From the IMG/VR virus record IMGVR_UViG_3300046787_000200, positions 124,001-188,000 of that record: 64,000 nucleotides of DNA, one strand, 5' to 3'. Below the pieces are notes generated by a model. It was given only the letters and a program-made list of their open reading frames with translations. It was not told the origin of the DNA and ran no database searches. Positions 929 through 51,812 of this stretch are shown here, piece after piece. The translations under genes were made by a program, and so were the position numbers. Position 1 is the stretch's first letter; each line of letters begins with the position of its first letter.

Positions 929-1137
929 AAGAGTTTCCATACACTGTAACTACTAAGAAACTCAAGCACGAGGCCGAACAATGGTGCACCAAGAATATTG
1001 GGGAACGATGGTTTGCTGTGGGGAGAAAGACAGGCAATTGGACATGCTTTTGGGCAGGAAGAGATGATCCTAAAAGTTATCGCTGGCACTTTAAAAATGA
1101 AAAAGATGCTGTTATGTTTTCGTTGAGGTGGTTATGA
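925..1137 (+). CDS. LRW-family small protein 5
   Basis: ATG925 (ATGA overlap); WCTKNIG...RW...DAVMFSLRWL. Confidence 0.85.
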   Translation: MKEFPYTVTTKKLKHEAEQWCTKNIGERWFAVGRKTGNWTCFWAGRDDPKSYRWHFKNEKDAVMFSLRWL

Positions 1138-1340
1138 TAAAGAAACAATATCATAGGCATCCAACGTCAGTAGGTTATTTCAGTAACTTTATCAGAATGA
1201 ATGACCCCGAAGGTGTCATTGAAGATGAACTGAAGAAATACAATGCCTCAGTTGGTAAAAGCAAGAATAAAAACTATAAACTGAATGTTAAGTGGCACGA
1301 TGAAAAATTATATATGTTGTTTGTATTGAGGTATCAATGA
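1134..1340 (+). CDS. LRW-family small protein 6
   Basis: ATG1134 (ATGA overlap); ends EKLYMLFVLRYQ. Confidence 0.8.
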   Translation: MIKKQYHRHPTSVGYFSNFIRMNDPEGVIEDELKKYNASVGKSKNKNYKLNVKWHDEKLYMLFVLRYQ

Positions 1341-1546
1341 GAGAACTAAAGAAAGAACTGTGGCCCCACAAGGTAGAGCTTGATTTGGATCAAAGTCAGC
1401 AAAAGATTGTGGAAATAGAAACTTGGCTGGGCGAACATTATGGTATTTATAAAGGTCGCTGGAATCAGGTCAACCATTATGACCATACTACATTTTATTT
1501 CCGTTCAGGCAGTGATGCTACTATGTTTAGTTTGAGGTGGCAATGA
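1337..1546 (+). CDS. LRW-family small protein 7
   Basis: ATGA overlap; IETWLGEHYG...RW...DATMFSLRWQ. Confidence 0.85.
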   Translation: MRELKKELWPHKVELDLDQSQQKIVEIETWLGEHYGIYKGRWNQVNHYDHTTFYFRSGSDATMFSLRWQ

Positions 1547-1794
1547 CTATTACTAGTTCAATGTTACAACATCTTAATGTTAAGGTACCAAAGTTATACA
1601 AAGTTGTATATGCTAAAACAATAGACGGCGTTCAAGCACAATGGCAAGTAAGTTATAAAGATTATATTGTAAATGAATGGCTTAAGGAAAACTGCGAATA
1701 TCCTTACTATCATAGTCCCGGATATCTTACAGAAAAGTTTATTGAGTTTACAGATGAAAAAGAAGCGTTGTGGTTTAGTTTGAGGTTTGAATGA
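1543..1794 (+). CDS. LRW-family small protein 8
   Basis: ATG1543 (ATGA overlap); EWLKEN...EKEALWFSLRFE. Confidence 0.85.
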   Translation: MTITSSMLQHLNVKVPKLYKVVYAKTIDGVQAQWQVSYKDYIVNEWLKENCEYPYYHSPGYLTEKFIEFTDEKEALWFSLRFE

Positions 1795-2045
1795 TAGTAA
1801 GTGAAGGTAAAATATTCGGTGAAAGATACTATACAGTTGATCCTGAGTTGGTTGACTTCAATGACTTTGATCCAAACTTTTTTCATCAATCCTGGCACGA
1901 TATAGAAATATGGTGTATCAAAACATTTGGATGCACCCCTGCAAATGGTGTTTGGGAACCTCACGGTAGATGGTATATGAACAATAGTAAGTTTTGGTTC
2001 AAAGATAAAAAAGATTTAGAATGGTTCTTACTAAAATGGGAATGA
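1791..2045 (+). CDS. LRW-family small protein 9
   Basis: ATGA overlap; WCIKTFG...RW...FWFKDKKDLEWFLLKWE. Confidence 0.85.
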   Translation: MIVSEGKIFGERYYTVDPELVDFNDFDPNFFHQSWHDIEIWCIKTFGCTPANGVWEPHGRWYMNNSKFWFKDKKDLEWFLLKWE

Positions 2046-2278
2046 AGATACATCACTATAAGCGTTTTGCCAATAACACATATTATTTTGTCGCGGCTTT
2101 TCCTGCACCAGATATAAATCTAACATATGAGATTAGAAAATGGTGTTATGAAGCGTACGGGTTACCGAATTATAAACCCGATACTGTTGAAACTCGTTGG
2201 GAAGATGATGTAAAATATGGTGAGATTACATTTGAAAGAGAAAGTGATTTAACTTTGTTTTTATTGAGGTGGGAATGA
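2042..2278 (+). CDS. LRW-family small protein 10
   Basis: ATG2042 (ATGA overlap); WCYEAYG...RW...ESDLTLFLLRWE. Confidence 0.85.
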   Translation: MKIHHYKRFANNTYYFVAAFPAPDINLTYEIRKWCYEAYGLPNYKPDTVETRWEDDVKYGEITFERESDLTLFLLRWE

Positions 2279-2478
2279 GTTTTATTGAAGAAGGAATGCG
2301 TGAATATTCATTCTATGGTGCAGGACAAGGTAGTGATAAGTTTTATGAAATGACTACTTGGTGTAGTGAAAACTTATATCACGGTGGTTATTATGAACCT
2401 AACTGGTGGTATGAATACCCATTCATATTCTTTAGTGATGAAAAAGAGTATATGTTATTTTTATTGAGGTGGCAATGA
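2275..2478 (+). CDS. LRW-family small protein 11
   Basis: ATG2275 (ATGA overlap); WCSEN...EKEYMLFLLRWQ. Confidence 0.85.
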   Translation: MSFIEEGMREYSFYGAGQGSDKFYEMTTWCSENLYHGGYYEPNWWYEYPFIFFSDEKEYMLFLLRWQ

Positions 2479-2738
2479 GAGACAATATCCACGAATTTAT
2501 TGACTCTTGGAAAGTATACGACAGACAGCACAAGTGTGATGTTGACTGGAACAGTCGTTTTAAATGTGGCGGCTATTATTCTGCTAAAGTCAGTAGATCC
2601 AGTATAACAGACGAATGGAATCAAATGCACAAATGGTGCGAGGAGTATATCGGCAAGCAAAGATATGCATGGACAGGTTCTACTTTTTGGTTTGAGACTA
2701 AAGAGGATACAGCATTTTTTATATTGAGATGGCTATGA
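2475..2738 (+). CDS. LRW-family small protein 12
   Basis: ATG2475 (ATGA overlap); WCEEYIG...FWFETKEDTAFFILRWL. Confidence 0.85.
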   Translation: MRDNIHEFIDSWKVYDRQHKCDVDWNSRFKCGGYYSAKVSRSSITDEWNQMHKWCEEYIGKQRYAWTGSTFWFETKEDTAFFILRWL

Positions 2739-2947
2739 GTAAAATAGATTATTGTAATATACCAGTAGTCTATACGAAAGTATCTACTGAACATCATTAT
2801 AATATGCGTCAATGGTTAGTTGATAACATAGACCCGGCTTGTTATGATGCTGAGGATTTCAGCCCAGTTAATGAAGATTACAGTAAAAGAACTATTTGGT
2901 TTGCTAATCATAAAGATGCAGTGTGGTTTAGATTAATATGGGAGTGA
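2735..2947 (+). CDS. LRW-family small protein 13
   Basis: ATG2735 (ATGA overlap); WLVDNI...DAVWFRLIWE. Confidence 0.8.
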   Translation: MSKIDYCNIPVVYTKVSTEHHYNMRQWLVDNIDPACYDAEDFSPVNEDYSKRTIWFANHKDAVWFRLIWE

Positions 2948-3168
2948 CCATAAAAGTATACCAGCCATATGCACCTGTGTTACAATGGCTACAAGACAAT
3001 GTAGGAACTATGCTACATTATAAGCCTATCATCTTTTGGCACGGCGAAGGTTGGCATTTAACAGTAGGACATGAAGTTGCAAACAGAGGACAAATGGGTA
3101 GACCTTATTGTACAGTAGAGTTTGATGATGAAGAAAAGGCAACTTGGTTTGGATTAGTATGGGGTTAA
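2944..3168 (+). CDS. LRW-family small protein 14
   Basis: GTG2944 (GTGA overlap) or ATG2938; WLQDNVG...EEKATWFGLVWG. Confidence 0.8.
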   Translation: MTIKVYQPYAPVLQWLQDNVGTMLHYKPIIFWHGEGWHLTVGHEVANRGQMGRPYCTVEFDDEEKATWFGLVWG

Positions 3169-3416
3169 AAGAAGATATATTAGATAAGATGAGTAAGCAG
3201 ATTTCTAATCATGTTGATTGGGAAATATTAGCCGATGTGAAAATAAGCGGCGGCTGGACCTGTGTTAAGTTAGATAGATATCTTAGTAATGAACACGCAG
3301 TTGATATTAAAATTTGGATCGAAGAAAACTGCACCGGTAAGTATGACTACTCGAATACAAAGTTTTTATTTGAAAAGAAGCAAGATGCTGAGTGGTTCAT
3401 ATTAAGATGGCAGTAA
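3159..3416 (+). CDS. LRW-family small protein 15
   Basis: ATG3159; WIEENC...FEKKQDAEWFILRWQ. Confidence 0.8.
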   Translation: MGLKEDILDKMSKQISNHVDWEILADVKISGGWTCVKLDRYLSNEHAVDIKIWIEENCTGKYDYSNTKFLFEKKQDAEWFILRWQ

Positions 3417-3646
3417 TGTATGAACATTATGATGAAGCTGGGTGGGAACATACACAACCGGGTTGGTATGAATGTAAAGTTAGAGCAGAACACATAGACA
3501 AATATGATGAAATGACCAAATGGTTAGAAAGTAATATTGGCAAATACAAAAGACATTGTAGATGGTGTGTAACTGATACTAATGTAGTTAGTTTTAAGTT
3601 TAGATATGAACGAGATTATATATTATTCACATTGAGGTGGAGTTAA
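3416..3646 (+). CDS. LRW-family small protein 16
   Basis: ATG3416 (TAATG overlap); WLESNIG...RW...ERDYILFTLRWS. Confidence 0.85.
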   Translation: MYEHYDEAGWEHTQPGWYECKVRAEHIDKYDEMTKWLESNIGKYKRHCRWCVTDTNVVSFKFRYERDYILFTLRWS

Positions 3647-3934
3647 ATGGAATTCTTTTTTACTGAAGCTGGCAACAATAGACCGTTCTTTATTTACAGA
3701 CTTAAAGTAGATGAAATAACCACTGAGATGCACGAGTGGTGTCTTGACTATCCTAGTAAAGGACCGTTCAGTCGTTGGCATATTGACCGTAAGATGATAA
3801 CAGATTCTAAAACAAACACAGTAACAAAGTTTGATATAGTTATTCAGTTTGAACTTAAGGATGCTTATCTTGCGTTTATGTATGCATTTGCAGGTCATAT
3901 TTTAAAAGACTTAACCTGGAAAGAATATAGATGA
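3647..3934 (+). CDS. Degenerate LRW-family protein with C-terminal extension
   Basis: EMHEWC...SRW...FELKDAYLAFMYAF, then about 14 extra residues; GAGGTGG upstream. Confidence 0.7.
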   Translation: MEFFFTEAGNNRPFFIYRLKVDEITTEMHEWCLDYPSKGPFSRWHIDRKMITDSKTNTVTKFDIVIQFELKDAYLAFMYAFAGHILKDLTWKEYR

Positions 3935-4215
3935 AAATACTACTGAATAGAAGTATTGGTGATAACATTAGACTAAACAGATATAAAAGAAATATGGAAT
4001 ACTCTATTATTAAAGACGGTTGTGATACTTATCCGTGGATGGAAACATTTGTTATCTGGCCACGCAGAAGTGTAAGTGGAGCACCATTATTCTTTACTAA
4101 AGCATATAAGCGTCAAGTATGGGTAGTATGGGGTAGCGGTTTTCACATGGAACCGATAGTTCAATACGCTACAGCATTTGATTTATTAACATATGACGAC
4201 AATAAAACCGTTTAA
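3931..4215 (+). CDS. Hypothetical protein
   Basis: ATGA overlap; no family motif seen. Confidence 0.6.
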   Translation: MKILLNRSIGDNIRLNRYKRNMEYSIIKDGCDTYPWMETFVIWPRRSVSGAPLFFTKAYKRQVWVVWGSGFHMEPIVQYATAFDLLTYDDNKTV

Positions 4216-4471
4216 AGATTATGATGACGATGATCCTAATATAGAACAGCGGAAAAAACGCTGGGACTATTGGGCGGCATTAAAACAGATTCGTAAAGAA
4301 TATATGACTGATATGAAGTCACTTGATGGACAGTTTGATGCATTTGACTTTGAAGATTACATTGAAGAAAACTATGGAATTAAGATGAACATAGTAGATG
4401 GAAACATTACTGATGGATACAAAGTAATGGATGAAAAGAAGTATCTAATATTTTTATTAAAATTCCAATGA
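4193..4471 (+). CDS. LRW-family small protein 17 (same subfamily as 193-429)
   Basis: DGYKVMDEKKYLIFLLKFQ aligns with TGYKIVDEEKFAWCVLRYS. Confidence 0.8.
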   Translation: MTTIKPFKDYDDDDPNIEQRKKRWDYWAALKQIRKEYMTDMKSLDGQFDAFDFEDYIEENYGIKMNIVDGNITDGYKVMDEKKYLIFLLKFQ

Positions 4472-4818
4472 ACAACTCACCTTTTGAAATATACAAAACA
4501 GAAAGAAATCGCTGGGTAACACACTGGCCTACATTTAAAAACATCAGAGATACAGAGACCGGTATAAAACTATTAGATATACTATTTGGTCAAATAAAAT
4601 GTGAGGAAGTGGGATTAGCACTACTTGTGCGTAATGGTGAAATAGATACACTGTGGATTAGTTATAGTGCTTGGGCAACTGATGTTAATAACTATTTCTC
4701 CGAATACTTACAAGATATGTATGAGATTCGTGGTGTAGTATTTCATAAACAACACGAAGCAGAACAACTACAAGATATATTAGAGAAGAAATATATTTGG
4801 AAAGTATTACAAGCATGA
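4468..4818 (+). CDS. Hypothetical protein, possibly a degenerate LRW member
   Basis: ATGA overlap; ends EKKYIWKVLQA. Confidence 0.65.
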   Translation: MNNSPFEIYKTERNRWVTHWPTFKNIRDTETGIKLLDILFGQIKCEEVGLALLVRNGEIDTLWISYSAWATDVNNYFSEYLQDMYEIRGVVFHKQHEAEQLQDILEKKYIWKVLQA

Positions 4819-5075
4819 CATTCTTCCCTAAGCCGGAGATTATAGAAATCGAACCAATCTACATTCGTAAATTCAAAAAGACCGTTTCAGTTGACAATAT
4901 ATGGATAGATAGTGTATTCTATGAGATTACAAAGTTTCCTATGGGTAGACAAAATACTATAGATTGGTTAACTGAACGTTATGGATATATGAAGTATTCC
5001 AATACATGGTGGTATACACATAATGGAATCTGTATGAACGATAAAATTTACACACATTATAAATTAATGGAATAA
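4815..5075 (+). CDS. Degenerate LRW-family protein
   Basis: ATG4815 (ATGA overlap); IDWLTERYG...WW...DKIYTHYKLME. Confidence 0.7.
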   Translation: MTFFPKPEIIEIEPIYIRKFKKTVSVDNIWIDSVFYEITKFPMGRQNTIDWLTERYGYMKYSNTWWYTHNGICMNDKIYTHYKLME

Positions 5076-5077
5076 TT

Positions 5078-5641
5078 ATGGCAAATGACATTATGATAGA
5101 CATTGAGAGTTTAGATACAACACCTAACTGTGTTATCTTAACTATTGGCGCGGTGCGCTTTGACCCTAAAGGTAGCGGAGTTGTTGAACGATTAGAACTA
5201 CGACCTACAGTAGAAGATCAAACAGAGATTTACGGGAGAAGTATCAATGAAGATACATTGCGTTGGTGGAGTGAACAGAGCCCTGAAGCACTTGAAGAAG
5301 CAATGGGAGACAATGGACGAGTCCCGTTTAAAGAGTGTATGGAGACCCTTTATAAGTTTTGTTGGAACCGTCGTGCTGTTTGGAGTAATGGTGCACCTTT
5401 TGACTTAGTTGTGATGGAGAATGCGTGGCGACAAGTTAGCGATAAGCCTAATCCTATTCCCTGGCCTTTCTGGTCTATGCGTGATACACGAACATTGTGG
5501 GAAATAACAGGTGTCAGTCTTAAAGACGGTGGACATACTACAAGTCACAAAGCAGTTGAAGATGCCGAAAGACAAGCTATTGTTGTACAAAAAGCGTATA
5601 CTAAACTTATCAAAGCAGAATTGGTAGCACCCCCAAAATGA
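5078..5641 (+). CDS. DEDD-family 3'-5' exonuclease (Rv2179c/RNase AS-like)
   Basis: MIDIESL (ExoI), WSNGAPFD (ExoII), RDTRT, H-KAVEDA (ExoIII). Confidence 0.85.
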   Translation: MANDIMIDIESLDTTPNCVILTIGAVRFDPKGSGVVERLELRPTVEDQTEIYGRSINEDTLRWWSEQSPEALEEAMGDNGRVPFKECMETLYKFCWNRRAVWSNGAPFDLVVMENAWRQVSDKPNPIPWPFWSMRDTRTLWEITGVSLKDGGHTTSHKAVEDAERQAIVVQKAYTKLIKAELVAPPK

Positions 5642-6219
5642 GAATTGATTCAGACGTAGATATTGACTTCGGTGATAGAGATAAGTTATTACAGCTTATC
5701 AAGCATACACCAGCGGCAATGCGTAATGCTAATCCTATACGTAAACATAATACAGGTGTTTACGTCACAGATATACCATATGATCCAGTAAATGATATGG
5801 CTGCAATTGATTATGTTGAAGCAGAGAAGCGTGGTTATTTTAAGTTAGATTTGTTGAATGTTCATGTTTATAGTCAAGTACGTGATGAGATGCATTTAGT
5901 TGAGTTGATGCGTGAACCTAACTGGGATAACTTAAAGAATAAAGACTTTGTAGAGAAACTGATCCACTTGGGAAATCATTATTATTCATTGGAAAAGATG
6001 CCTGAGCGTGTGAATAGTATTCCAAGATTAGCAATGTTTCTAGCTGTAATTAGACCTGCTAAAAAGCATTTGATAGGAAAGACTTGGAAGGAAGTAAGTG
6101 AAACTATTTGGGATAAAGGGTCAGATGGTTATAGCTTTAAAAAGAGTCACGCTATTGCGTATGCACAATTAGTCGTTGTACATATGAATCTACTTACACA
6201 ATCCTCTTTACTAAAGTAA
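5638..6219 (+). CDS. dnaE: Miniature DNA polymerase III alpha-like protein, catalytic (C-terminal) half
   Basis: SDVDIDF, HNTGVYV, FKLDLLN, LAVIRPA and GYSFKKSHAIAYA match the DnaE motifs PDFDVDF, HAGGVVI, KFDFLG, ALFRPG and GYGFNKSHSAAYA in order. Confidence 0.8.
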   Translation: MRIDSDVDIDFGDRDKLLQLIKHTPAAMRNANPIRKHNTGVYVTDIPYDPVNDMAAIDYVEAEKRGYFKLDLLNVHVYSQVRDEMHLVELMREPNWDNLKNKDFVEKLIHLGNHYYSLEKMPERVNSIPRLAMFLAVIRPAKKHLIGKTWKEVSETIWDKGSDGYSFKKSHAIAYAQLVVVHMNLLTQSSLLK

Positions 6220-6574
6220 TACTACGGCGTTTACTTCTACGTTTATTGAGTTCGCTTATACTACAAGTAGGACCGTGAATTATAGTAAGACTTTTGTTAT
6301 TGAAGGTTCTTAGATAGGGTTTGAAAATACTCCATTCTTCCTTCAAAAACAGATTTATGGGTATAAGTCGATTGCTTTCCCACCACCAAATATCACCTAA
6401 TTCTAAGAATTTTTCTTTTATTACAGTGTCTGCTATTGCACCGTAATCATATATTGTAGTAACAATATCATCCCTGTTTTGTACTATACCTACGTAGTCC
6501 TGGTTGGCATGCGAACATATTGTTATGAACGGGTGATTTAGAGTTAATTTGTTGAAAAATTCGTTTTGAATCAT
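6194..6574 (-). CDS. Hypothetical protein
   Basis: 126 aa ORF; TAAATA box 6 nt before ATG; convergent overlap with the dnaE half. Confidence 0.7.
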   Translation of the reverse strand: MIQNEFFNKLTLNHPFITICSHANQDYVGIVQNRDDIVTTIYDYGAIADTVIKEKFLELGDIWWWESNRLIPINLFLKEEWSIFKPYLRTFNNKSLTIIHGPTCSISELNKRRSKRRSITLVKRIV

Positions 6575-7458: not shown

Positions 7459-8439
7459 ATGTTTGATATCCTATCAATAATTCCCGGTAAAAAGAAATTA
7501 ACACACGGTGGATGGCATAGTTTTAATGCTATCTGCTGTAGCCATCGCGGGCATAAAACTGACAAACGTAGTCGAGGTGGTATTAAGTTTGACGGGCAAA
7601 ATAATTGGTCATATCATTGCTTTAATTGCGGTTTTAAATGTGGGTTTATGTTGGGTAAAAGTATTACTCAAAATACAAAAAGTTTATTGCAATGGTCGGG
7701 TATTGATCCTACACAAATAAGTAAATGGAGTTTAGAAAGTTTACAGCATAAAGATTTACTAGACTTTACTAATCTTAAAAAACAAAAATCAAAAATAAAA
7801 TTTAAAGAACATACATTGCCTGAAGGTGAGTTAATAGATGTAAATAATCCATTACACAAAGTATACACAGATTATCTGTCTGCTAGGTCGATAAATTATA
7901 ATGACTACCCGTTCTTAGTTACACCTAACGATACTGGCAGACAGTCAAATAGAATCATTATCCCCTACACTTATAACAATAAGATTGTTGGGCATACGAG
8001 CAGATTCTTAGATAATAAAATCCCTAAATATATTAACGAGCAACAACCAGGCTATGTATTTGGTTATGACTTTCAGAAACCCGATTGGGAAGTATGTTTG
8101 TTAGTTGAAGGTATCTTTGATGCATTAAGTTTAAATGCTTGTGCATTAACACATAATACAATCAACGATGATCAAGCACAAATACTAGCACAATTGAATA
8201 AACGTATTATCTTTATTCCAGATAGAGATAAGACAGGTTTAGAAACTTGTGATAGAGCATTAGAACTAGGTTATAGTGTAAGTATTCCTGATTGGGAAGA
8301 TGAAATCAAAGATGTAAATGACGCGGTAGTTAAGTATGGTAAGTTGCCTACATTGCTCAGTATATTGAGTAGTGCGACAACTAGTAAAATCAAAATAGAA
8401 CTACAGAGGAAGAAAATTGAAAAAAGATTACGAAAATAA
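7459..8439 (+). CDS. DNA primase (Zn-finger + TOPRIM)
   Basis: CCSH...YHCFNCG zinc ribbon; RIIIPY; LVEGIFDAL and DRD TOPRIM motifs. Confidence 0.88.
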   Translation: MFDILSIIPGKKKLTHGGWHSFNAICCSHRGHKTDKRSRGGIKFDGQNNWSYHCFNCGFKCGFMLGKSITQNTKSLLQWSGIDPTQISKWSLESLQHKDLLDFTNLKKQKSKIKFKEHTLPEGELIDVNNPLHKVYTDYLSARSINYNDYPFLVTPNDTGRQSNRIIIPYTYNNKIVGHTSRFLDNKIPKYINEQQPGYVFGYDFQKPDWEVCLLVEGIFDALSLNACALTHNTINDDQAQILAQLNKRIIFIPDRDKTGLETCDRALELGYSVSIPDWEDEIKDVNDAVVKYGKLPTLLSILSSATTSKIKIELQRKKIEKRLRK

Positions 8440-9859
8440 AAAAGATTATAGCGTTGATGTGCAAAAGATATTTTTGCGTATGATGATTACTGAAGCCGAA
8501 CTCTATACTAGGGTTATGAATATTCTCAATAGTGAGAATTTCGATAGAACACTAAGACCAGTTGCAGATTTATATAAAGAGCATACGAACAAATATAATG
8601 TATTGCCAGATCCAGTGCAAATCAAAGCAATTACTGGACAAGATATTGAACCAGTTCCTAACTTAAATCCTAGTCACTTTGATTGGTTCTTAGATGAGTT
8701 TGAATCATTTACTAAACGACAAGAATTAGAACGTGCTATCCTCAAAGCGGCTGATCTATTAGAGAAGGGCGATTTTAGTCCAGTTGAAAAACTAATCAAA
8801 GACGCAGTGCAAATTAGTTTGCAGAAAGACATGGGAACTGATTACTTTGCAGATCCTGCATCACGTATTAACAAATACTTTAATAGTGGTGGACAAGTTT
8901 CAACAGGCTGGCCGCAAATGGATCGTATCTTATATGGTGGTTTCAGTCGAGGTGAATTGAACATCTTTGCAGGTGGTTCTGGTTCAGGTAAGTCTCTTGT
9001 TATGATGAATATCGCATTGAACTGGTTGCAAGCAGGTATGAGTGGTGTTTATATCACACTTGAATTGAGCGAAGAACTAACTAGCTTGAGAACAGATGCT
9101 ATGTTGACTATGATGGGCACGAAAGCTATTCGTAAAGACATTGATAATACCAGTTTGAAAGTTAAGATGGTTGGTAAAAAGTCTGGTCAATATCGGGTTA
9201 AAGCATTACCTGCACAAAGTAATGTAAATGATATTCGTGCTTACTTAAAAGAAGTACAGATTCAAACAGGTATTAAGATTGACTTTGTGATGGTTGACTA
9301 CTTAGACTTGGTTATGCCTGTCTCTGTTAAAGTTAATCCTAACGATCAGTTCATCAAAGACAAGTATGTTGCAGAAGAATTGCGTAACTTAGCTAAAGAG
9401 ATGGGTATCTTGTTAGTCACAGCTTCACAGTTAAATCGTAGTGCTGTTGATGAAATTGAGTTTGACCATAGTCACATTGCTGGTGGTATCTCAAAGATTA
9501 ACACAGCAGATAACGTGTTCGGTATCTTTACAAGTCGTAGTATGCGTGAACGTGGTAAGTATCAGATTCAATGTATGAAGTCACGTAGTTCAACAGGTGT
9601 AGGTCAAAAAATTGACTTAGACTATGATATGGAAACTATGCGCATTAGTGATAGTGATCCTGACAATGAGAATAGCTATACTCCTAAACCTAGTGCTAAT
9701 CAAATTATGAGTCAATTAAAGCCACAATCTACATTAGCGTCAACAGAACCTATTATTGATCAAACTACAGGGGAGATATTAGAGCCTGAAAATAAGAAAA
9801 TCGTAGCAGATGTTCAGGGTTCTAAACTAAAGGCAATGCTAAAGGGTTTAAAGAAATAA
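8417..9859 (+). CDS. dnaB: Replicative DnaB/gp41-like helicase
   Basis: TTG start with GAGGA SD; Walker A GGSGSGKS, Walker B MVDYLDL, TASQLNR, KSR. Confidence 0.92.
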   Translation: MKKDYENKKDYSVDVQKIFLRMMITEAELYTRVMNILNSENFDRTLRPVADLYKEHTNKYNVLPDPVQIKAITGQDIEPVPNLNPSHFDWFLDEFESFTKRQELERAILKAADLLEKGDFSPVEKLIKDAVQISLQKDMGTDYFADPASRINKYFNSGGQVSTGWPQMDRILYGGFSRGELNIFAGGSGSGKSLVMMNIALNWLQAGMSGVYITLELSEELTSLRTDAMLTMMGTKAIRKDIDNTSLKVKMVGKKSGQYRVKALPAQSNVNDIRAYLKEVQIQTGIKIDFVMVDYLDLVMPVSVKVNPNDQFIKDKYVAEELRNLAKEMGILLVTASQLNRSAVDEIEFDHSHIAGGISKINTADNVFGIFTSRSMRERGKYQIQCMKSRSSTGVGQKIDLDYDMETMRISDSDPDNENSYTPKPSANQIMSQLKPQSTLASTEPIIDQTTGEILEPENKKIVADVQGSKLKAMLKGLKK

Positions 9860-10144: not shown

Positions 10145-11981
10145 ATTTAAAGAATCAAAACTAAATGAAATAGACTTAAGCTCATTTTTAGGAGATTATG
10201 GATCTGCCGCTGTAAGATCAGGGGTAGGATCAATGATGGGGAAAAATGTATTAAGTACTGCAGATCAGATGGCCAAAGATGAATTCGTTAAGACCTTCAC
10301 TAGTCGTGCTAATAGTGGATTGCAAAGTGCGATTAACAGCGGGTTAGTTGATGTTAATGCCGCAGGTAAAGGTGCGGCAACTACTGCACAATCTACTACT
10401 CAACCACAAGCACAACAAGGTGCTCAAACTACTCCAGCAAATGCAATTGCACAGAAGCGTATTGATGCACAGAAACTAGCACAGCAACGTGCTGATGCTG
10501 AAGGTAAGCCGATCAGTACCGCACCAAATCGGGCTGCTCCTAATCCAGCACAGATAAGACAACAAAAACAACAAGCCGCGGCACAATCTGCACAGCAACA
10601 AATGGCTCCAGTTAGCAAACTACCTGCTAATCAATTCGCAAAGAGTGCGGCTAATGTAAGACAAGCTCAACAGGGTCAGGCTGCTACAGCCGCTCAAGGA
10701 CAAATGACTCCTAAAGTTGCAGGACCTACTCCTAAGACACCTGAACAGATTAGACAAGCTAAACAACTGGCTGCTACTCAAGCCGCACAAGGTCAAATGA
10801 ACCCTGCAAGTAAATTACCTGCAGACCAGTTTAATAAGAGTGCTGATAATGTAAGACAACAACAGCAAGCCACTGCAACTCAAACTGCACAAGGTCAAAT
10901 GGCTGCACCTAAGCAAGTTGATCCTAGATTTCCTAATGTTAAGTATGACGGAGTTACAGGTGAACCTACCCCTGAATGGCAGAAAGAGTTAGACAAGCAA
11001 GAGGCAGCCCGTGAAGTAGAGTATCAAGCAAATCTCCAAAAATCAAAAGCCGCTGCCGCTGAACGAGATGCACAGAATGCTGAGTTAGTCCGACAAGGTC
11101 TAAGGCAAAATCCGTCTAACGTTACGAATAACGTTACACAAACAACTACTGCACCTGACAATGTAAAAATAACAAACGGTGATCCTGCAGAAATACAAGC
11201 AAAAATGCAAGCAAAGATTGATGCAATGAAGGAAAAGAATCCTAAACTTGCGGCTGCAATGCAAGCAGAGATAGATAGTCAGTTCAAGCAAGATAAGCCA
11301 GACAATACTATTCAGATGCCTAATCGTAGTGGAAAGCCTAGAAATTCTGGCAAAAAAGCATTTAATCAGATGGCACAAGATTTAGGTAAGGTTGCTGAAA
11401 GTCGCTTTGCTAAACTAAACTATATCTTTGAAAGTATTTTAGCTGAACAAGATCCTGCACAAGGTGCGACTAAACAAACTATCAGTCAATATATCACTAA
11501 CTTCTTCAAACAGTTTATGAAGAATGTAGATATTAGTGATCCTACTGTAATGACTAATGTAGCATCATTGGCTAAAGAGTTAGAGCAAAACTATGCAAAA
11601 GATAAAGGTAAAACAACATTACCTAAGTTAGCTAACTTAGCATATTCTGTCAGTCATGCACAACAGTTGAAAGATCCAGAACAGGCTCAAACTACAAAGT
11701 CTGCACAACCGACACCAGCAACAACTGCACCGCAAAGTTCTACACCTCAAACAACGCAGGCGTCAACTCAGCAAGCTAATATGACTGTTGCACAAATCAA
11801 AAAATTAATGCAAGGTATGAATACTAAGCAGAAACAATCTATATTGACAGCATTACAATCAGAATTAAGTAAAGATACTCCTCCTAATGTTTCTGTAGGC
11901 CGACAAAAAAATAATAAAAAAGCAATGGACCCTTCAGATGCAAGATTATTAGCTGTAGCAAAACAACAAGGTAAGATTTAA
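10131..11981 (+). CDS. Q/A/T-rich putative internal head protein
   Basis: GTG start, MKLNEFKESKLNE N-terminus, low complexity, about 54 aa internal duplication. Confidence 0.6.
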   Translation: MKLNEFKESKLNEIDLSSFLGDYGSAAVRSGVGSMMGKNVLSTADQMAKDEFVKTFTSRANSGLQSAINSGLVDVNAAGKGAATTAQSTTQPQAQQGAQTTPANAIAQKRIDAQKLAQQRADAEGKPISTAPNRAAPNPAQIRQQKQQAAAQSAQQQMAPVSKLPANQFAKSAANVRQAQQGQAATAAQGQMTPKVAGPTPKTPEQIRQAKQLAATQAAQGQMNPASKLPADQFNKSADNVRQQQQATATQTAQGQMAAPKQVDPRFPNVKYDGVTGEPTPEWQKELDKQEAAREVEYQANLQKSKAAAAERDAQNAELVRQGLRQNPSNVTNNVTQTTTAPDNVKITNGDPAEIQAKMQAKIDAMKEKNPKLAAAMQAEIDSQFKQDKPDNTIQMPNRSGKPRNSGKKAFNQMAQDLGKVAESRFAKLNYIFESILAEQDPAQGATKQTISQYITNFFKQFMKNVDISDPTVMTNVASLAKELEQNYAKDKGKTTLPKLANLAYSVSHAQQLKDPEQAQTTKSAQPTPATTAPQSSTPQTTQASTQQANMTVAQIKKLMQGMNTKQKQSILTALQSELSKDTPPNVSVGRQKNNKKAMDPSDARLLAVAKQQGKI

Positions 11982-13133
11982 ATGAACTTAACAGAAACAT
12001 TAGCTTATCTTAGAAACAAAGTAGATGCTATATCTAATGTAATCACAGAAGATAAAGGTCACTTAGATCATCCGGAAGATTTAATATTCTTACGAGGTGT
12101 TCAAGGTGCTAATCAAGCTGTTCAAGCAATGGCTGATACTGTGGCTAAACCCGAAAAGGTAACAATCAAATGGGATGGATATCCTGCATTGATATTTGGT
12201 CGTAACAGCAATGGCAAGTTCAGTATATTAGACAAACATATGTTCAATAAGAAAGATGGCAGTGGTCGTCAAGTATTCAGTCCAGAACAGTTTGCTCAAT
12301 ATGACCAAGCACGTGGAGTAAATCGCACAGACTTACATCAGTTAATTGCACAAATATGGCCTGGATTAGAAAAATCTGATAGAAGTAAGGGTTATTATTG
12401 GGGTGATTTGTTATTTAGTAAACCATTAGTAGAACAGAACGGGCTATACACATTCAAAGCAAACCCTAAGGGTATTACATATACTGTAGATACAAACAGT
12501 GATTTGGGTAAATTCTTGGATGGTAAAAATTCAGGTATTGTAGTACATGGTTACATTCCCCCGGACGCATTAACAACTGACCAATCAACTCCTTTAGATG
12601 GCACTATTGGCAATCTTAAGAATAATAGCGATGTAGCTATATTACCTGCTAAAATGCCAATCACTCCTAATCTAAAGTTAAATGCCACATTACTTAAGAG
12701 AGCGCAATCAGCTATACAAAAGTATGGACAAGCAGTAGAACAGTTAATGACTACAGCACCTCAAGCCAGAAATACATTCAATCAATTGTTCACTACGTAT
12801 ATTAATAAGCGTATTGTAGCAGGAGACCTGAATGATTTGTATGCAGGATTTATTGAGTATGTTAATTCTAGACCAATGACTGATAAGATGCGTGAGAAGA
12901 TTAATCAACACTTAGCAGCCAACAAAGCCGGCGTAGTGGGAGCATTTACTATCTGGGTAGCTGTCTACAATCTCAAAATGAACATTGTGGACCAGCTGAA
13001 TAAAGCCGCAAAAACTGCCCCTGTCAAGGGTTATTTAGATGATGGCACACAAACACAAGAGGGTTTTGTGAGTCACGGGCTTAAATTTGTAGATAGAATG
13101 GGTTTCAGCCGTCAGAATTTGGCTGGAAGATAA
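11982..13133 (+). CDS. DUF6267-like protein with ligase-type KxDG motif
   Basis: HLDHPED...TIKWDGYPALIFGR...DKHMFNK; family assignment from memory of the motifs. Confidence 0.6.
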   Translation: MNLTETLAYLRNKVDAISNVITEDKGHLDHPEDLIFLRGVQGANQAVQAMADTVAKPEKVTIKWDGYPALIFGRNSNGKFSILDKHMFNKKDGSGRQVFSPEQFAQYDQARGVNRTDLHQLIAQIWPGLEKSDRSKGYYWGDLLFSKPLVEQNGLYTFKANPKGITYTVDTNSDLGKFLDGKNSGIVVHGYIPPDALTTDQSTPLDGTIGNLKNNSDVAILPAKMPITPNLKLNATLLKRAQSAIQKYGQAVEQLMTTAPQARNTFNQLFTTYINKRIVAGDLNDLYAGFIEYVNSRPMTDKMREKINQHLAANKAGVVGAFTIWVAVYNLKMNIVDQLNKAAKTAPVKGYLDDGTQTQEGFVSHGLKFVDRMGFSRQNLAGR

Positions 13134-48745: not shown

Positions 48746-49252
48746 ATGAAGTCTGATATTTACGGTCAACAAATTTTTAATGAAAATGAATTGTGCTTAT
48801 TGTATTTGCAAGATCCGTTGCGTACAATCAAACATGCCTTTGTAGATAAAGATATTAATTTTAATGATATCTTGCAATTAGAAAATACACCAAAATTAAT
48901 TAAGTATACTGATCCAAAGTTATCAGTCGAAGATTTTGACAATAATAATCAATCAAAATGGCACTTGCCTAGTGAATATTATAATATGGACATTGCCAAA
49001 TATGTATTGGACAAGTGTACCAGTGAAGCAGAACTGCAACGAGCCGGAGATGAGTTAATCAAGTTCCAAGAACGTGATATGTTCATCTTGCTAAAATATC
49101 TCAAGTACTTAGTAGATACCATGCGTAAGAACAATATAGTATGGGGAGTAGGCCGAGGTAGTAGTGTAGCAAGTTTTGTATTGTTTTTACTAGAAATTCA
49201 CCGTATAAATAGTTTGTACTATGACTTGTCTATTGACGAGTTTTTAAAATAA
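48746..49252 (+). CDS. dnaE: Miniature DNA polymerase III alpha-like protein, N-terminal half
   Basis: VGRGSSVASFVLFLLEIHRINSLYYDLSIDEFL matches DnaE [33 protein letters not shown]. Confidence 0.82.
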   Translation: MKSDIYGQQIFNENELCLLYLQDPLRTIKHAFVDKDINFNDILQLENTPKLIKYTDPKLSVEDFDNNNQSKWHLPSEYYNMDIAKYVLDKCTSEAELQRAGDELIKFQERDMFILLKYLKYLVDTMRKNNIVWGVGRGSSVASFVLFLLEIHRINSLYYDLSIDEFLK

Positions 49253-50578: not shown

Positions 50579-50892
50579 AATGGTTTTTTAAATGGCTAGC
50601 GTCAAAGATTGACGATACTAAGTATTCGGATCCTGATGAACCAATGCCTATGAATACTTTGAGTAGCGGTAGACCAAAGTCCCGTAGAATCGCAGTAAGA
50701 GAATCTGACGAATTAGGTTCAGAACCAATTACATTCAGGATGTTTAAAGCAAACGGCGGATGGGCAATTGAATTTAGACAATATGATAACAAAACTGATA
50801 GAATGGATACTTCATTGTATGTTGTTAACAATGAAGAAGAACTTGGCAAACACATTTCACAAATCATTACTATGGAAGCATTAAAGCGATGA
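50575..50892 (+). CDS. Hypothetical protein
   Basis: ATGA overlaps on both sides. Confidence 0.7.
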   Translation: MKWFFKWLASKIDDTKYSDPDEPMPMNTLSSGRPKSRRIAVRESDELGSEPITFRMFKANGGWAIEFRQYDNKTDRMDTSLYVVNNEEELGKHISQIITMEALKR

Positions 50893-51812
50893 AGAATAAA
50901 CTTTGGGTAGAGAAATATCGTCCGAACACAGTATCAGATTATGTGTTTGTTGATGAACGACAAAAGAAACAAGTAGAGGGTTGGGTTAATGATGGAATGA
51001 TTCCTCACTTATTGTTATCCGGTGACCCGGGTACAGGTAAAACAACACTAGCTAAAGTATTGATACATGAGCTTGGTGTAGAAGAATATGATGTATTAGA
51101 AATCAATGCTTCACGTGAGAACGGTATTGATAACATGCGTGAAAAGATTAATGGCTTTGTACAAACTATGCCGTTTGGTAAATTCAAAGTTGTTCTATTA
51201 GACGAAGCTGATTATTTAACACAAGCTTCTCAAGCGGCATTGCGTAACGATATGGAAGCATATGCTGATACTGTACGTTACATTCTTACTTGTAACTATC
51301 AACATAAAATTATTCCTGCATTAAAATCTCGTTGCCATGAGTTTCATATCGCAAAGACAGATCAAACAGAGTTCACAGCTAGAGCGGCGACAGTATTGGT
51401 TACTGAAGGGGTTGAGTTTGATTTGGATGATTTAGATAGTTATGTACGTGCTACTTATCCAGACTTGCGTAAATGTTTGAATCAACTACAAGTTAACAGT
51501 AGTGGTGGTAAATTAATGCAACCACAAGCACAGGGTAGTAGTGAACATGAGCTATTATTAGAAGCAACACAGTTGTTTAAGTCAGGTAAGATCATGGAAG
51601 CACGACAACAATTGATGCAATATATCGCTATGTATCCTACACGTATTGAAGATTGTTATCGTTGGATGTATGAGAACTTAGACTTGTGGGGTAATTCACA
51701 AGAAAAGAAAGATGCAAGTATCATTACTATTCGTAATGGTCTAGCAAATCTGCCACTAGTAGGTATTCCTGAGATTAGTTTGGCAGCAACATTAGTGGAG
51801 TTGACAGCATGA
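50889..51812 (+). CDS. Clamp loader AAA+ subunit (RFC small/T4 gp44-like)
   Basis: LWVEKYRP, GDPGTGKT, INAS, LLDEAD, SRC. Confidence 0.93.
   Translation: MKNKLWVEKYRPNTVSDYVFVDERQKKQVEGWVNDGMIPHLLLSGDPGTGKTTLAKVLIHELGVEEYDVLEINASRENGIDNMREKINGFVQTMPFGKFKVVLLDEADYLTQASQAALRNDMEAYADTVRYILTCNYQHKIIPALKSRCHEFHIAKTDQTEFTARAATVLVTEGVEFDLDDLDSYVRATYPDLRKCLNQLQVNSSGGKLMQPQAQGSSEHELLLEATQLFKSGKIMEARQQLMQYIAMYPTRIEDCYRWMYENLDLWGNSQEKKDASIITIRNGLANLPLVGIPEISLAATLVELTA

Follow-up and report, generated by a model that had tools for sequence, protein, structure and literature searches.

Can the catalytic centre of a bacterial-type DNA polymerase be divided between two polypeptides whose genes are tens of kilobases apart? 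The question is raised by a 64,000-nucleotide (nt) stretch of viral DNA, hereafter the window (positions 124,001 to 188,000 of IMG/VR record IMGVR_UViG_3300046787_000200, JGI Ga0485269_000009, 352,012 bp, from a freshwater metagenome), in which two small open reading frames (ORFs), located on the same (+) strand with 43.1 kb between them, each resemble a different part of the core of bacterial Pol III alpha (DnaE). The upstream ORF corresponds to the C-terminal part of this core (C-half) and the downstream one to the N-terminal part (N-half). The parent genome is that of a T4-like jumbo myovirus, an uncultured freshwater phage, and the window encodes tail sheath and tube proteins, a DnaG-like primase, a DnaB-like helicase, a clamp loader, and MazG, ClpA/B-like, DnaJ, PhoH and GroES-like proteins; its nucleotides gave zero match with GenBank phages in a megablast search. 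The overall best explanation of the locus, held here with good confidence, is a two-chain minimal C-family polymerase that operates beside a family B polymerase (PolB) replisome, probably in short-patch synthesis. That the two ORFs encode a two-subunit enzyme is very probable; the narrower claim that it synthesizes DNA on a template, in replication or repair, is moderately favoured.

The two genes, and the motifs that relate them to the E. coli enzyme, are the following, with lengths in amino acids (aa):

48746..49252, + strand: N-half of the split mini Pol III alpha, 168 aa (ORF; PF07733; PHROG 11127; profile against structure 2HNH)
49145..49165, + strand: GVGRGSS motif of the N-half, residues 134-140, equivalent to E. 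coli G-P-G-R362-G-S364 (invariant in 59 N-halves; aligned to GRGS)
5638..6219, + strand: C-half of the split mini Pol III alpha, 193 aa (ORF; PHROG 11778; profile against 2HNH)
5653..5667, + strand: D6-V-D8-I-D10 of the C-half, equivalent to E. coli D401-F-D403-V-D405, with the first two catalytic carboxylates (alignment to 2HNH 399-417)
5842..5850, + strand: K69-L-D71 of the C-half, equivalent to E. coli K553-F-D555, D71 being the third catalytic carboxylate (alignment to 2HNH)
6052..6057, + strand: R139-P140 of the C-half, matching the ...FRP(G) motif in the fingers of the E. coli enzyme near residue 640 (invariant in 76 C-halves)
6136..6150, + strand: F167-K-K-S-H171 of the C-half, matching the F-N-K-S-H motif in the fingers of the E. 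coli enzyme at about residues 756-760 (alignment to 2HNH)

The N-half is recognized by the Pfam model of the Pol III alpha NTPase domain (PF07733) with an E value of 1.6e-8 and 35 bits, against a gathering cut-off of 23.9, and by PHROG 11127 ('DNA polymerase') with an E value of 2.8e-38. The comparison of a family profile built from 59 N-halves with E. coli Pol III alpha (2HNH) gave an alignment that is ungapped over residues 319-392 (E 3e-7), in which L167/K168 of the N-half fall on L392/N393. The C-terminus of the protein (...VGRGSSVASFVLFLLEIHRINSLYYDLSIDEFLK-stop, with the end YYDLSIDEFLK) places EFLK at approximately residues 390-393 of the E. coli enzyme, and the stretch containing GVGRGSS aligns to residues 348-392. 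In the C-family core GRGS precedes the DxD motif by some 35-40 residues; here the two are on different polypeptides. Besides GVGRGSS, residues W72, P75, R99, E103 and F166 are invariant in the 59 N-halves, and, as judged by these alignments, the N-half corresponds to the N-terminal palm helices plus the GRGS element that binds the deoxynucleoside triphosphate (dNTP). The N-half has at least 7,969 scored relatives in metagenomes, and among the 120 listed the length ranges from 149 to 184 aa, being 168-170 in nearly all of them. In the first approximately 50 residues of the N-half D4 is conserved, and the pattern G-x-x-x-F and the motif LLY are found. Weak matches (E approx. 5e-4) restricted to the GRGS region were given by the Bacteroides phages DAC16, DAC20, DAC22 and SJC03 (approx. 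170-180 kb) and by a 2.6-kb Listeria phage record; these records may contain another reduced, or a full-length, DnaE-like gene.

PHROG 11778 ('DNA polymerase') matches the C-half with an E value of 2.2e-60; no match was found when it was compared alone with Pfam, nor in a single-sequence search of the PDB, for which a family profile was required. The profile of 76 C-halves, which are 31-58% identical to that of the window, gave three collinear blocks with 2HNH, at residues 399-417, 539-641 and 739-769 (E 2e-5). D6 and D8, as well as K69 and D71, are found in 76/76 sequences and D10 in 75 of them, and K168 and H171 are retained in at least 90%. The FKKSH region also aligns to positions 772-809 of PHROG 405, a full-length polymerase profile. 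By alignment, the C-half is thus the metal-binding palm beta-sheet followed by a finger stub. A search of 1.8 billion cluster representatives returned 414 relatives, nearly all of approximately 190-200 aa, with a single one of 375 aa.

In E. coli numbering the N-half stops at approximately N393 and M1 of the C-half lies at approximately 396 (R396), leaving about two residues unaccounted for. The break point is fixed in the family, with 54 of 58 N-halves stopping one residue past EFL, and with C-halves starting 1-11 residues (17 in one case) before the first catalytic Asp. From the alignments, it interrupts the nucleotidyltransferase core of Pol-beta type after the GS element and before the strand carrying DxD. 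A first-pass annotation of this DNA had delimited the two ORFs (48746-49252, 168 aa; 5638-6219, 193 aa, beginning MRIDSDVDIDF) exactly as found here, had proposed that they meet in DnaE, had picked 'DVD' and 'KLD' as the catalytic residues, had recognized no PHP, HhH or OB region and had noticed that intein ends are absent; all of these claims stand.

The latter point is of interest because the joining of the two products into a single chain, by a split intein, by RNA trans-splicing or by DNA rearrangement, would have a well-known precedent. Cyanobacterial DnaE (DnaE-n/DnaE-c, e.g. Npu/Ssp) is a full-length DnaE that is encoded by two distant genes and rejoined through a split intein, and it shares with the phage system the origin of a C-family polymerase from two distant genes; natural single-chain versions of the phage protein, described below, also speak for this explanation. 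The cyanobacterial split site is, however, different. In the phage the break at approximately 393/396 is in the catalytic core, the termini of the N- and C-proteins are DnaE-homologous to within about two residues instead of carrying intein halves, and the gap does not accommodate intein pieces of approximately 100 and 35 aa. The ATG of the next gene is found 10 nt after the N-half stop codon and that of the C-half overlaps the stop codon of the upstream gene (ATGA), so that there is no coding room for an intein; neither half contains a Hint/intein domain in Pfam, and no repeats of at least 9 nt are common to the two junctions. The spacing of the halves among relatives also varies from 4 kb to more than 180 kb. 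Thus, joining by intein or recombination was rejected and joining of any of the three types is hardly credible; the two products most likely stay separate.

Three natural fusions of the two halves were identified in metagenomes, namely P0175 (375 aa) and, from other assemblies, P0271 and P0272 (376 aa; 81% and 78% identical). The first 180 residues of P0175 correspond to the N-half (40% identity over the matched stretch) and are followed by a 10-residue linker, DNKEGIYNIA, and then by DFDID. PF07733 runs through the fusion junction with 59.6 bits, and NCBIfam DnaE models also span it. The fused gene (locus L006:1066-2193) is followed, at its 3' end, by the same convergent ORF that accompanies the C-half in the window (see below), which locates it at the C-half locus. 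The three fused sequences are monophyletic (SH-aLRT 100) in a maximum-likelihood N-half tree, where they branch at a depth of five levels within the split forms; thus, the split arrangement is the older one and fusion is a secondary re-joining. As far as the tree goes, the single-chain forms are secondary, and it does not decide on reduction from bacterial DnaE. No fused form was found among 50,697 GenBank phage records. In L252, from the split clade that is nearest to the fusions, the N-half (6001-6540) lies approximately 4 kb upstream of the primase and helicase genes (10357-12540), where other clades have the C-half, and neither a C-half nor the convergent ORF was found within 12.5 kb of it. 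The origin of the fusion by read-through of adjacent genes, also considered, is unsupported given this arrangement in the nearest split relative. The N-half and C-half genes have relocated independently in evolution. The nearest longer relatives of the fused enzyme, P0284 and P0285 (540-551 aa; E 6e-6 and 9e-4), contain PHP and PF07733 domains; they may represent a stage between full-length DnaE and the mini enzyme, or truncated gene calls.

The fusions allow the fold of the assembled protein to be predicted. The AlphaFold2 (AF2) model of P0175 is compact, with a mean predicted local distance difference test score (pLDDT) of 92.2 and a predicted template modelling score of 0.89; the sole weak block, residues 181-190, is the linker at the break. 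DFDID and KIDLL are carried by predicted strands 192-196 and 256-260, respectively, and the N-half-type first approximately 50 residues form a confidently predicted small beta-hairpin and helix. When this model, as opposed to the window proteins, was compared with the PDB using Foldseek, 16/16 matches at E <= 1e-3 were C-family polymerases, which include T. aquaticus Pol III alpha (4IQJ, 2HPI, 3E0D), M. tuberculosis DnaE1 (7PU7, 5LEW), the E. coli enzyme (2HNH, 5FKW) and PolC (3F2B), the best being 4IQJ (E 5e-9; TMq about 0.5). The three catalytic carboxylates, the GRGS element, a PF07733 score above threshold and, through P0175, similarity of fold thus connect the pair with the C-family core.

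By taking into account the modules in which they are found, the two halves could act separately, the N-half as an NTP-binding accessory of a clamp-loader/chaperonin module and the C-half as a metal-binding accessory of the primase-helicase pair. Their location in different modules and at clade-dependent positions, as in L252, agrees with this possibility. Each half, however, has only part of one Pol-beta-type active site, their co-occurrence is essentially complete, and their secondary natural fusion yields a confident single-domain model, which together make separate functions very improbable.

With respect to co-occurrence, the C-half was found in 96 GenBank phage records and the N-half in 103, with equal genus counts. 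The fused homologue, used as a probe, identified 96 records and 186 places, none of which covers at least 80% of the query, so that 90 of the records have both parts, far apart, and the collection is devoid of fused genes. For three (two Alishewanella and one Stenotrophomonas phage) of the 6/96 records with a single place, the window N-half as a query finds a weak N-half in the phage or in a close relative. The distance between the halves is 4 kb in RsoM2USA, 11, 31 or 43 kb in other relatives, and greater than 180 kb in Atu_ph07 and Phosso; seven IMG/VR contigs, including that of the window, have both halves 42-47 kb apart. Homologues of both are found in PA5oct, Atu_ph07, PBECO4/121Q, RaK2, GAP32 and CBB, the identity to cultured relatives being at most 47% for the N-half and 43% for the C-half, and the distribution of the halves takes in phages of Alpha- and Gammaproteobacteria as well as uncultured lineages.

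Both halves are clearly under purifying selection. The median ratio of nonsynonymous to synonymous substitution rates (dN/dS) with respect to close IMG/VR relatives amounts to 0.077 in the C-half and 0.094 in the N-half, values that are approximate because dS is often saturated. These data bear on the view that the two ORFs are decaying, functionless remnants of a captured bacterial dnaE that have been scattered by rearrangement, as might be suspected from the approximately 31% of a DnaE that is left, in two pieces and in permuted order, and from NCBIfam DnaE scores that are far under the cut-offs. Against it, dN/dS is approximately 0.08-0.09 for both pieces, the catalytic residues are invariant over 76 and 59 diverse sequences, relatives are numerous (at least 7,969 scored for the N-half and 414 cluster representatives for the C-half), starts and stops are fixed, and the pieces are distributed over phages of Alpha- and Gammaproteobacteria and uncultured lineages, no frameshifts or stops having been seen in relatives. 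Selection and conservation exclude decay, which is considered vanishingly improbable. Co-occurrence of the halves, conservation of the catalytic Asp residues (here invariant in the 76 C-halves), dN/dS and a separate family B polymerase had all been named by the first-pass annotation as checks on its proposal of a minimal two-subunit C-family polymerase; the first three, along with the fusions as Rosetta-stone evidence, support that proposal, and the fourth was located, as described below.

The genes that surround the two halves are listed here:

5078..5641, + strand: DEDDh 3'-5' exonuclease, Rv2179c-like, 187 aa (PF16473, E 5.5e-33; PHROG 255; motifs intact)
6194..6574, - strand: convergent 'WWW' protein, 126 aa, PHROG 11637 (a family without assigned function), which shares 26 nt with the 3' end of the C-half
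7459..9859, + strand: DnaG-like primase (7459-8439; PHROG 47) and DnaB-like helicase (8417-9859; PHROG 19)
50889..51812, + strand: large subunit of the clamp loader, 1.6 kb after the N-half (PHROG 168, E 4e-74)

The stop codon of the exonuclease gene and the start codon of the C-half overlap by 4 bp (ATGA), an arrangement from which translational coupling of the two genes is predicted in the lineage of the window. Most close IMG/VR relatives also have the exonuclease gene directly before that of the C-half, one subclade lacking it; its dN/dS is 0.07, and the protein is often better conserved than the C-half (up to 98% versus 85% identity at the same loci). It may be a proofreading partner of the polymerase, specific to this lineage. 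Its role as a universal partner was rejected, as it is missing upstream of the C-half in PAC2, Phosso, Atu_ph07, PBECO4 and SCTP-2, as well as in the IMG/VR subclade just mentioned. Upstream of the exonuclease gene (1128-5075, + strand), approximately 15 small ORFs of 70-116 aa are arranged back to back, often with overlaps of a few bases. No Pfam or PHROG match was found for the two closest to it (4468-5075), to which the search was limited; the run looks like an early-gene block.

The convergent ORF is instead a near-universal neighbour of the C-half. It is kept beside it in PAC2, Phosso, Atu_ph07, PBECO4 and SCTP-2, and in 77/80 diverse IMG/VR loci, recruited by the WWW protein alone, the C-half is found convergently downstream of it. 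The protein has an invariant WWW(E)SNR..P motif, a basic tail and a dN/dS of 0.036; it possibly acts together with the polymerase, or its position may simply reflect conserved synteny. No match was found in the Atlas. It was also considered as the missing thumb or DNA-binding part, and rejected: its AF2 model has a pLDDT of 87, but with Foldseek it gave only weak Hfq/Sm-like similarity (E 0.08) and unnamed viral homologues.

Primase and helicase genes are syntenic with the C-half in all relatives examined, and the block formed by the C-half, the WWW ORF, a structural protein, the primase and the helicase is conserved in PAC2/PA5oct, Phosso, Atu_ph07, PBECO4 and SCTP-2. Similarly, the block formed by the N-half, PHROG 14844, the GroES-like protein and the clamp loader is syntenic with that of PA5oct-like phages. 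A family B polymerase of 902 aa, with its exonuclease domain (PF03104 and PF00136), is encoded on the same contig approximately 15 kb past the end of the window (L170:18251-20870); ferritin-like, amidoligase, glycoside hydrolase 19 and SNase-like genes are found near it. In Pseudomonas phage PAC2 (PP408249.1; PA5oct-like; L168:26927-32153) the T4-type PolB is annotated as two pieces of 803 and 379 aa around a Hef-like homing endonuclease gene, so that PAC2 has two different split polymerases. The gp43-like PolB of PAC2 adjoins a PCNA-like clamp.

What the pair may do is limited by what it has lost. The 361 residues of the two chains correspond to approximately 31% of a full-length DnaE (approx. 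1160 aa). The thumb-containing segment 418-538 of the E. coli enzyme is reduced to approximately 34 residues and segment 642-738 to approximately 10, nothing is found past approximately residue 780, and the PHP domain is wholly absent. No PHP, HhH, OB or finger domain of Pfam was detected in either half at E <= 1, and the clamp-binding and tau-binding tail parts are not present in the two halves; the best score with the NCBIfam DnaE equivalogs (TIGR00594) is 35 bits, far from the full-length cut-offs of 434-1806. By comparison with bacterial DnaE (2HNH, 2HPI/4IQJ, 7PU7) and PolC (3F2B), the Pol-beta-like palm, GRGS, D401/D403/D555, K553, FRP and FNKSH are retained in the same order; on the other hand, the phage enzyme is divided over two chains and PHP, thumb, most fingers, HhH, beta-clamp motif, OB and tau-binding tail are gone.

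From these features, a mechanism can be proposed in which the two ORF products would associate non-covalently into one minimal Pol III alpha-type core. The N-half would provide the N-terminal helices of the palm and the loop with GRGS, by which Pol III alpha grips an incoming dNTP at its triphosphate, and the C-half the beta-sheet with D6, D8 and D71 for the binding of two Mg2+ ions, the lysine K69 and the reduced finger stub (RP and FKKSH). As the break is within the nucleotidyltransferase core, neither half is expected to be active alone. With PHP, thumb, most fingers, HhH, clamp-binding and OB parts missing, the enzyme would most likely be a short-patch, poorly processive DNA polymerase, which might work alongside the T4-type replisome of the phage (PolB, primase, DnaB-like helicase and clamp loader) in reactions such as primer extension, gap filling or recombination/repair synthesis. 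In the freshwater lineage it might be proofread by the coupled DEDDh exonuclease.

The same losses open the possibility that the pair is a nucleotidyltransferase, as opposed to a DNA-templated polymerase, which makes untemplated tails, primers or a nucleotide signal. The thumb and approximately 100 residues of the fingers are deleted, HhH, OB and clamp-binding parts are lacking, a complete family B replicase is already available to the phage, and many non-polymerase transferases are built on the Pol-beta-like fold (PMC11646218). To be set against these considerations are the retention of the nearly invariant C-family finger motifs (RP and FxKSH), the fact that the sole structural neighbours are replicative C-family polymerases, and the location of the genes within primase-helicase and clamp-loader modules. 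Furthermore, Pol X of African swine fever virus (ASFV), a reduced palm-plus-fingers polymerase with the Pol-beta fold that fills short gaps during repair in a virus with a family B replicase, is still a templated enzyme in spite of its minimal architecture (PMC11646218). The analogy with ASFV Pol X is functional only: both are drastically reduced polymerases encoded by large viruses, but Pol X, a member of family X instead of C, consists of one 174-aa chain and has no homology with the phage enzyme beyond the common fold. On balance, a transferase function is considered improbable, and the uses suggested in the first-pass annotation (priming, repair or untemplated synthesis) are speculative.

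With the minimal templated polymerase as the preferred reading, its position in the replication system may be considered. In Bacillus subtilis, DnaE extends primers and then hands them off to the main replicase PolC. The analogy, again functional, would fit the conserved place of the C-half gene by those of primase and helicase; the B. subtilis enzyme is, however, full-length, single-chain and clamp-binding, and the main replicase of the phage is of family B. A more specific proposal, entertained tentatively and considered less likely than not, is that the mini Pol III is a second replisomal polymerase in a mixed family B and C replisome, which would extend primase products or fill lagging-strand or recombination gaps. 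In this case, the division of the active site over two expression modules might act as an assembly gate.

Several points weigh against a two-chain templated polymerase. The two window proteins are known as a pair from sequence and from the model of a fused homologue, so that their binding to each other is inferred, and literature searches found no experimental work or activity data for any member of the family. The thumb and finger segment, which in full-length Pol III alpha makes further contacts with dNTP and template, is missing, and templated polymerization is therefore not guaranteed. N-half residues approximately 1-50 (48746-48900) are without a counterpart detected among the DnaE models of Pfam and NCBIfam. 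In the MAFFT alignment used for the AF2 model of P0175 the first approximately 20 residues of the C-half rows were misplaced, and the DxD strand of the model consequently rested on three sequences only. The exonuclease, its linkage being lineage-specific, cannot be a general part of the machine. To these are to be added the saturation of dS in many pairs and the origin of the contigs from RNA libraries that cover relatives of the locus, for which DNA carry-over is a possible source.

A split minimal Pol III alpha has been predicted before. Iyer, Anantharaman, Krishnan, Burroughs & Aravind (2021, Viruses 13:63, section 3.4.1; PMC7824862) described it, by computational analysis, in group 2.2 jumbo phages, placed it beside a family B polymerase, with a proposed role in the synthesis of one strand or in repair, and put forward the idea that the minimal form mirrors the ancestral C-family polymerase, which is a bolder variant of the mixed-replisome proposal. 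The enzyme of that section is the same as that of the window with respect to its two standalone proteins, encoded by distant genes, with an N-terminal nucleoside triphosphate (NTP)-binding unit and a C-terminal Mg2+/template-binding unit, and to the lack of other Pol III domains; the genomic setting (jumbo myovirus, PolB, T4-type/RFC-like clamp loader and DnaB-like helicase) is also the same. The present finding is thus a correct rediscovery, not a discovery. The window phage differs from those described there in being an uncultured, 352-kb freshwater phage with an exonuclease coupled to the C-half, and the window adds a new uncultured freshwater member to the already described split enzyme. 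Term searches of the text of the article gave no mention of natural single-chain versions and their secondary re-fusion, of a single-domain model, of the fixed break point, of purifying selection, of the coupling with an exonuclease in one lineage or of the convergent WWW ORF. In a separate study, PF07733 was found to be a marker of one marine jumbo-phage cluster (Weinheimer & Aylward 2022).

The natural re-fused variants represent a ready-made single-chain construct for biochemical and structural work, and culturable relatives (PA5oct, 121Q/PBECO4 and RaK2) make genetics feasible. If the two halves reconstitute an active enzyme, it would be, with 361 aa and without PHP, thumb, clamp and OB parts, the smallest known C-family polymerase, with the catalytic centre divided over two chains, and it would help to define the minimal requirements of the C family and contribute to the arguments on its origin. 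It would also follow that polymerases of bacterial and of archaeo-eukaryotic type work within a single replication system in a very abundant group of jumbo phages, as gauged by the relatives scored in metagenomes for the N-half alone, at least 7,969 in number.

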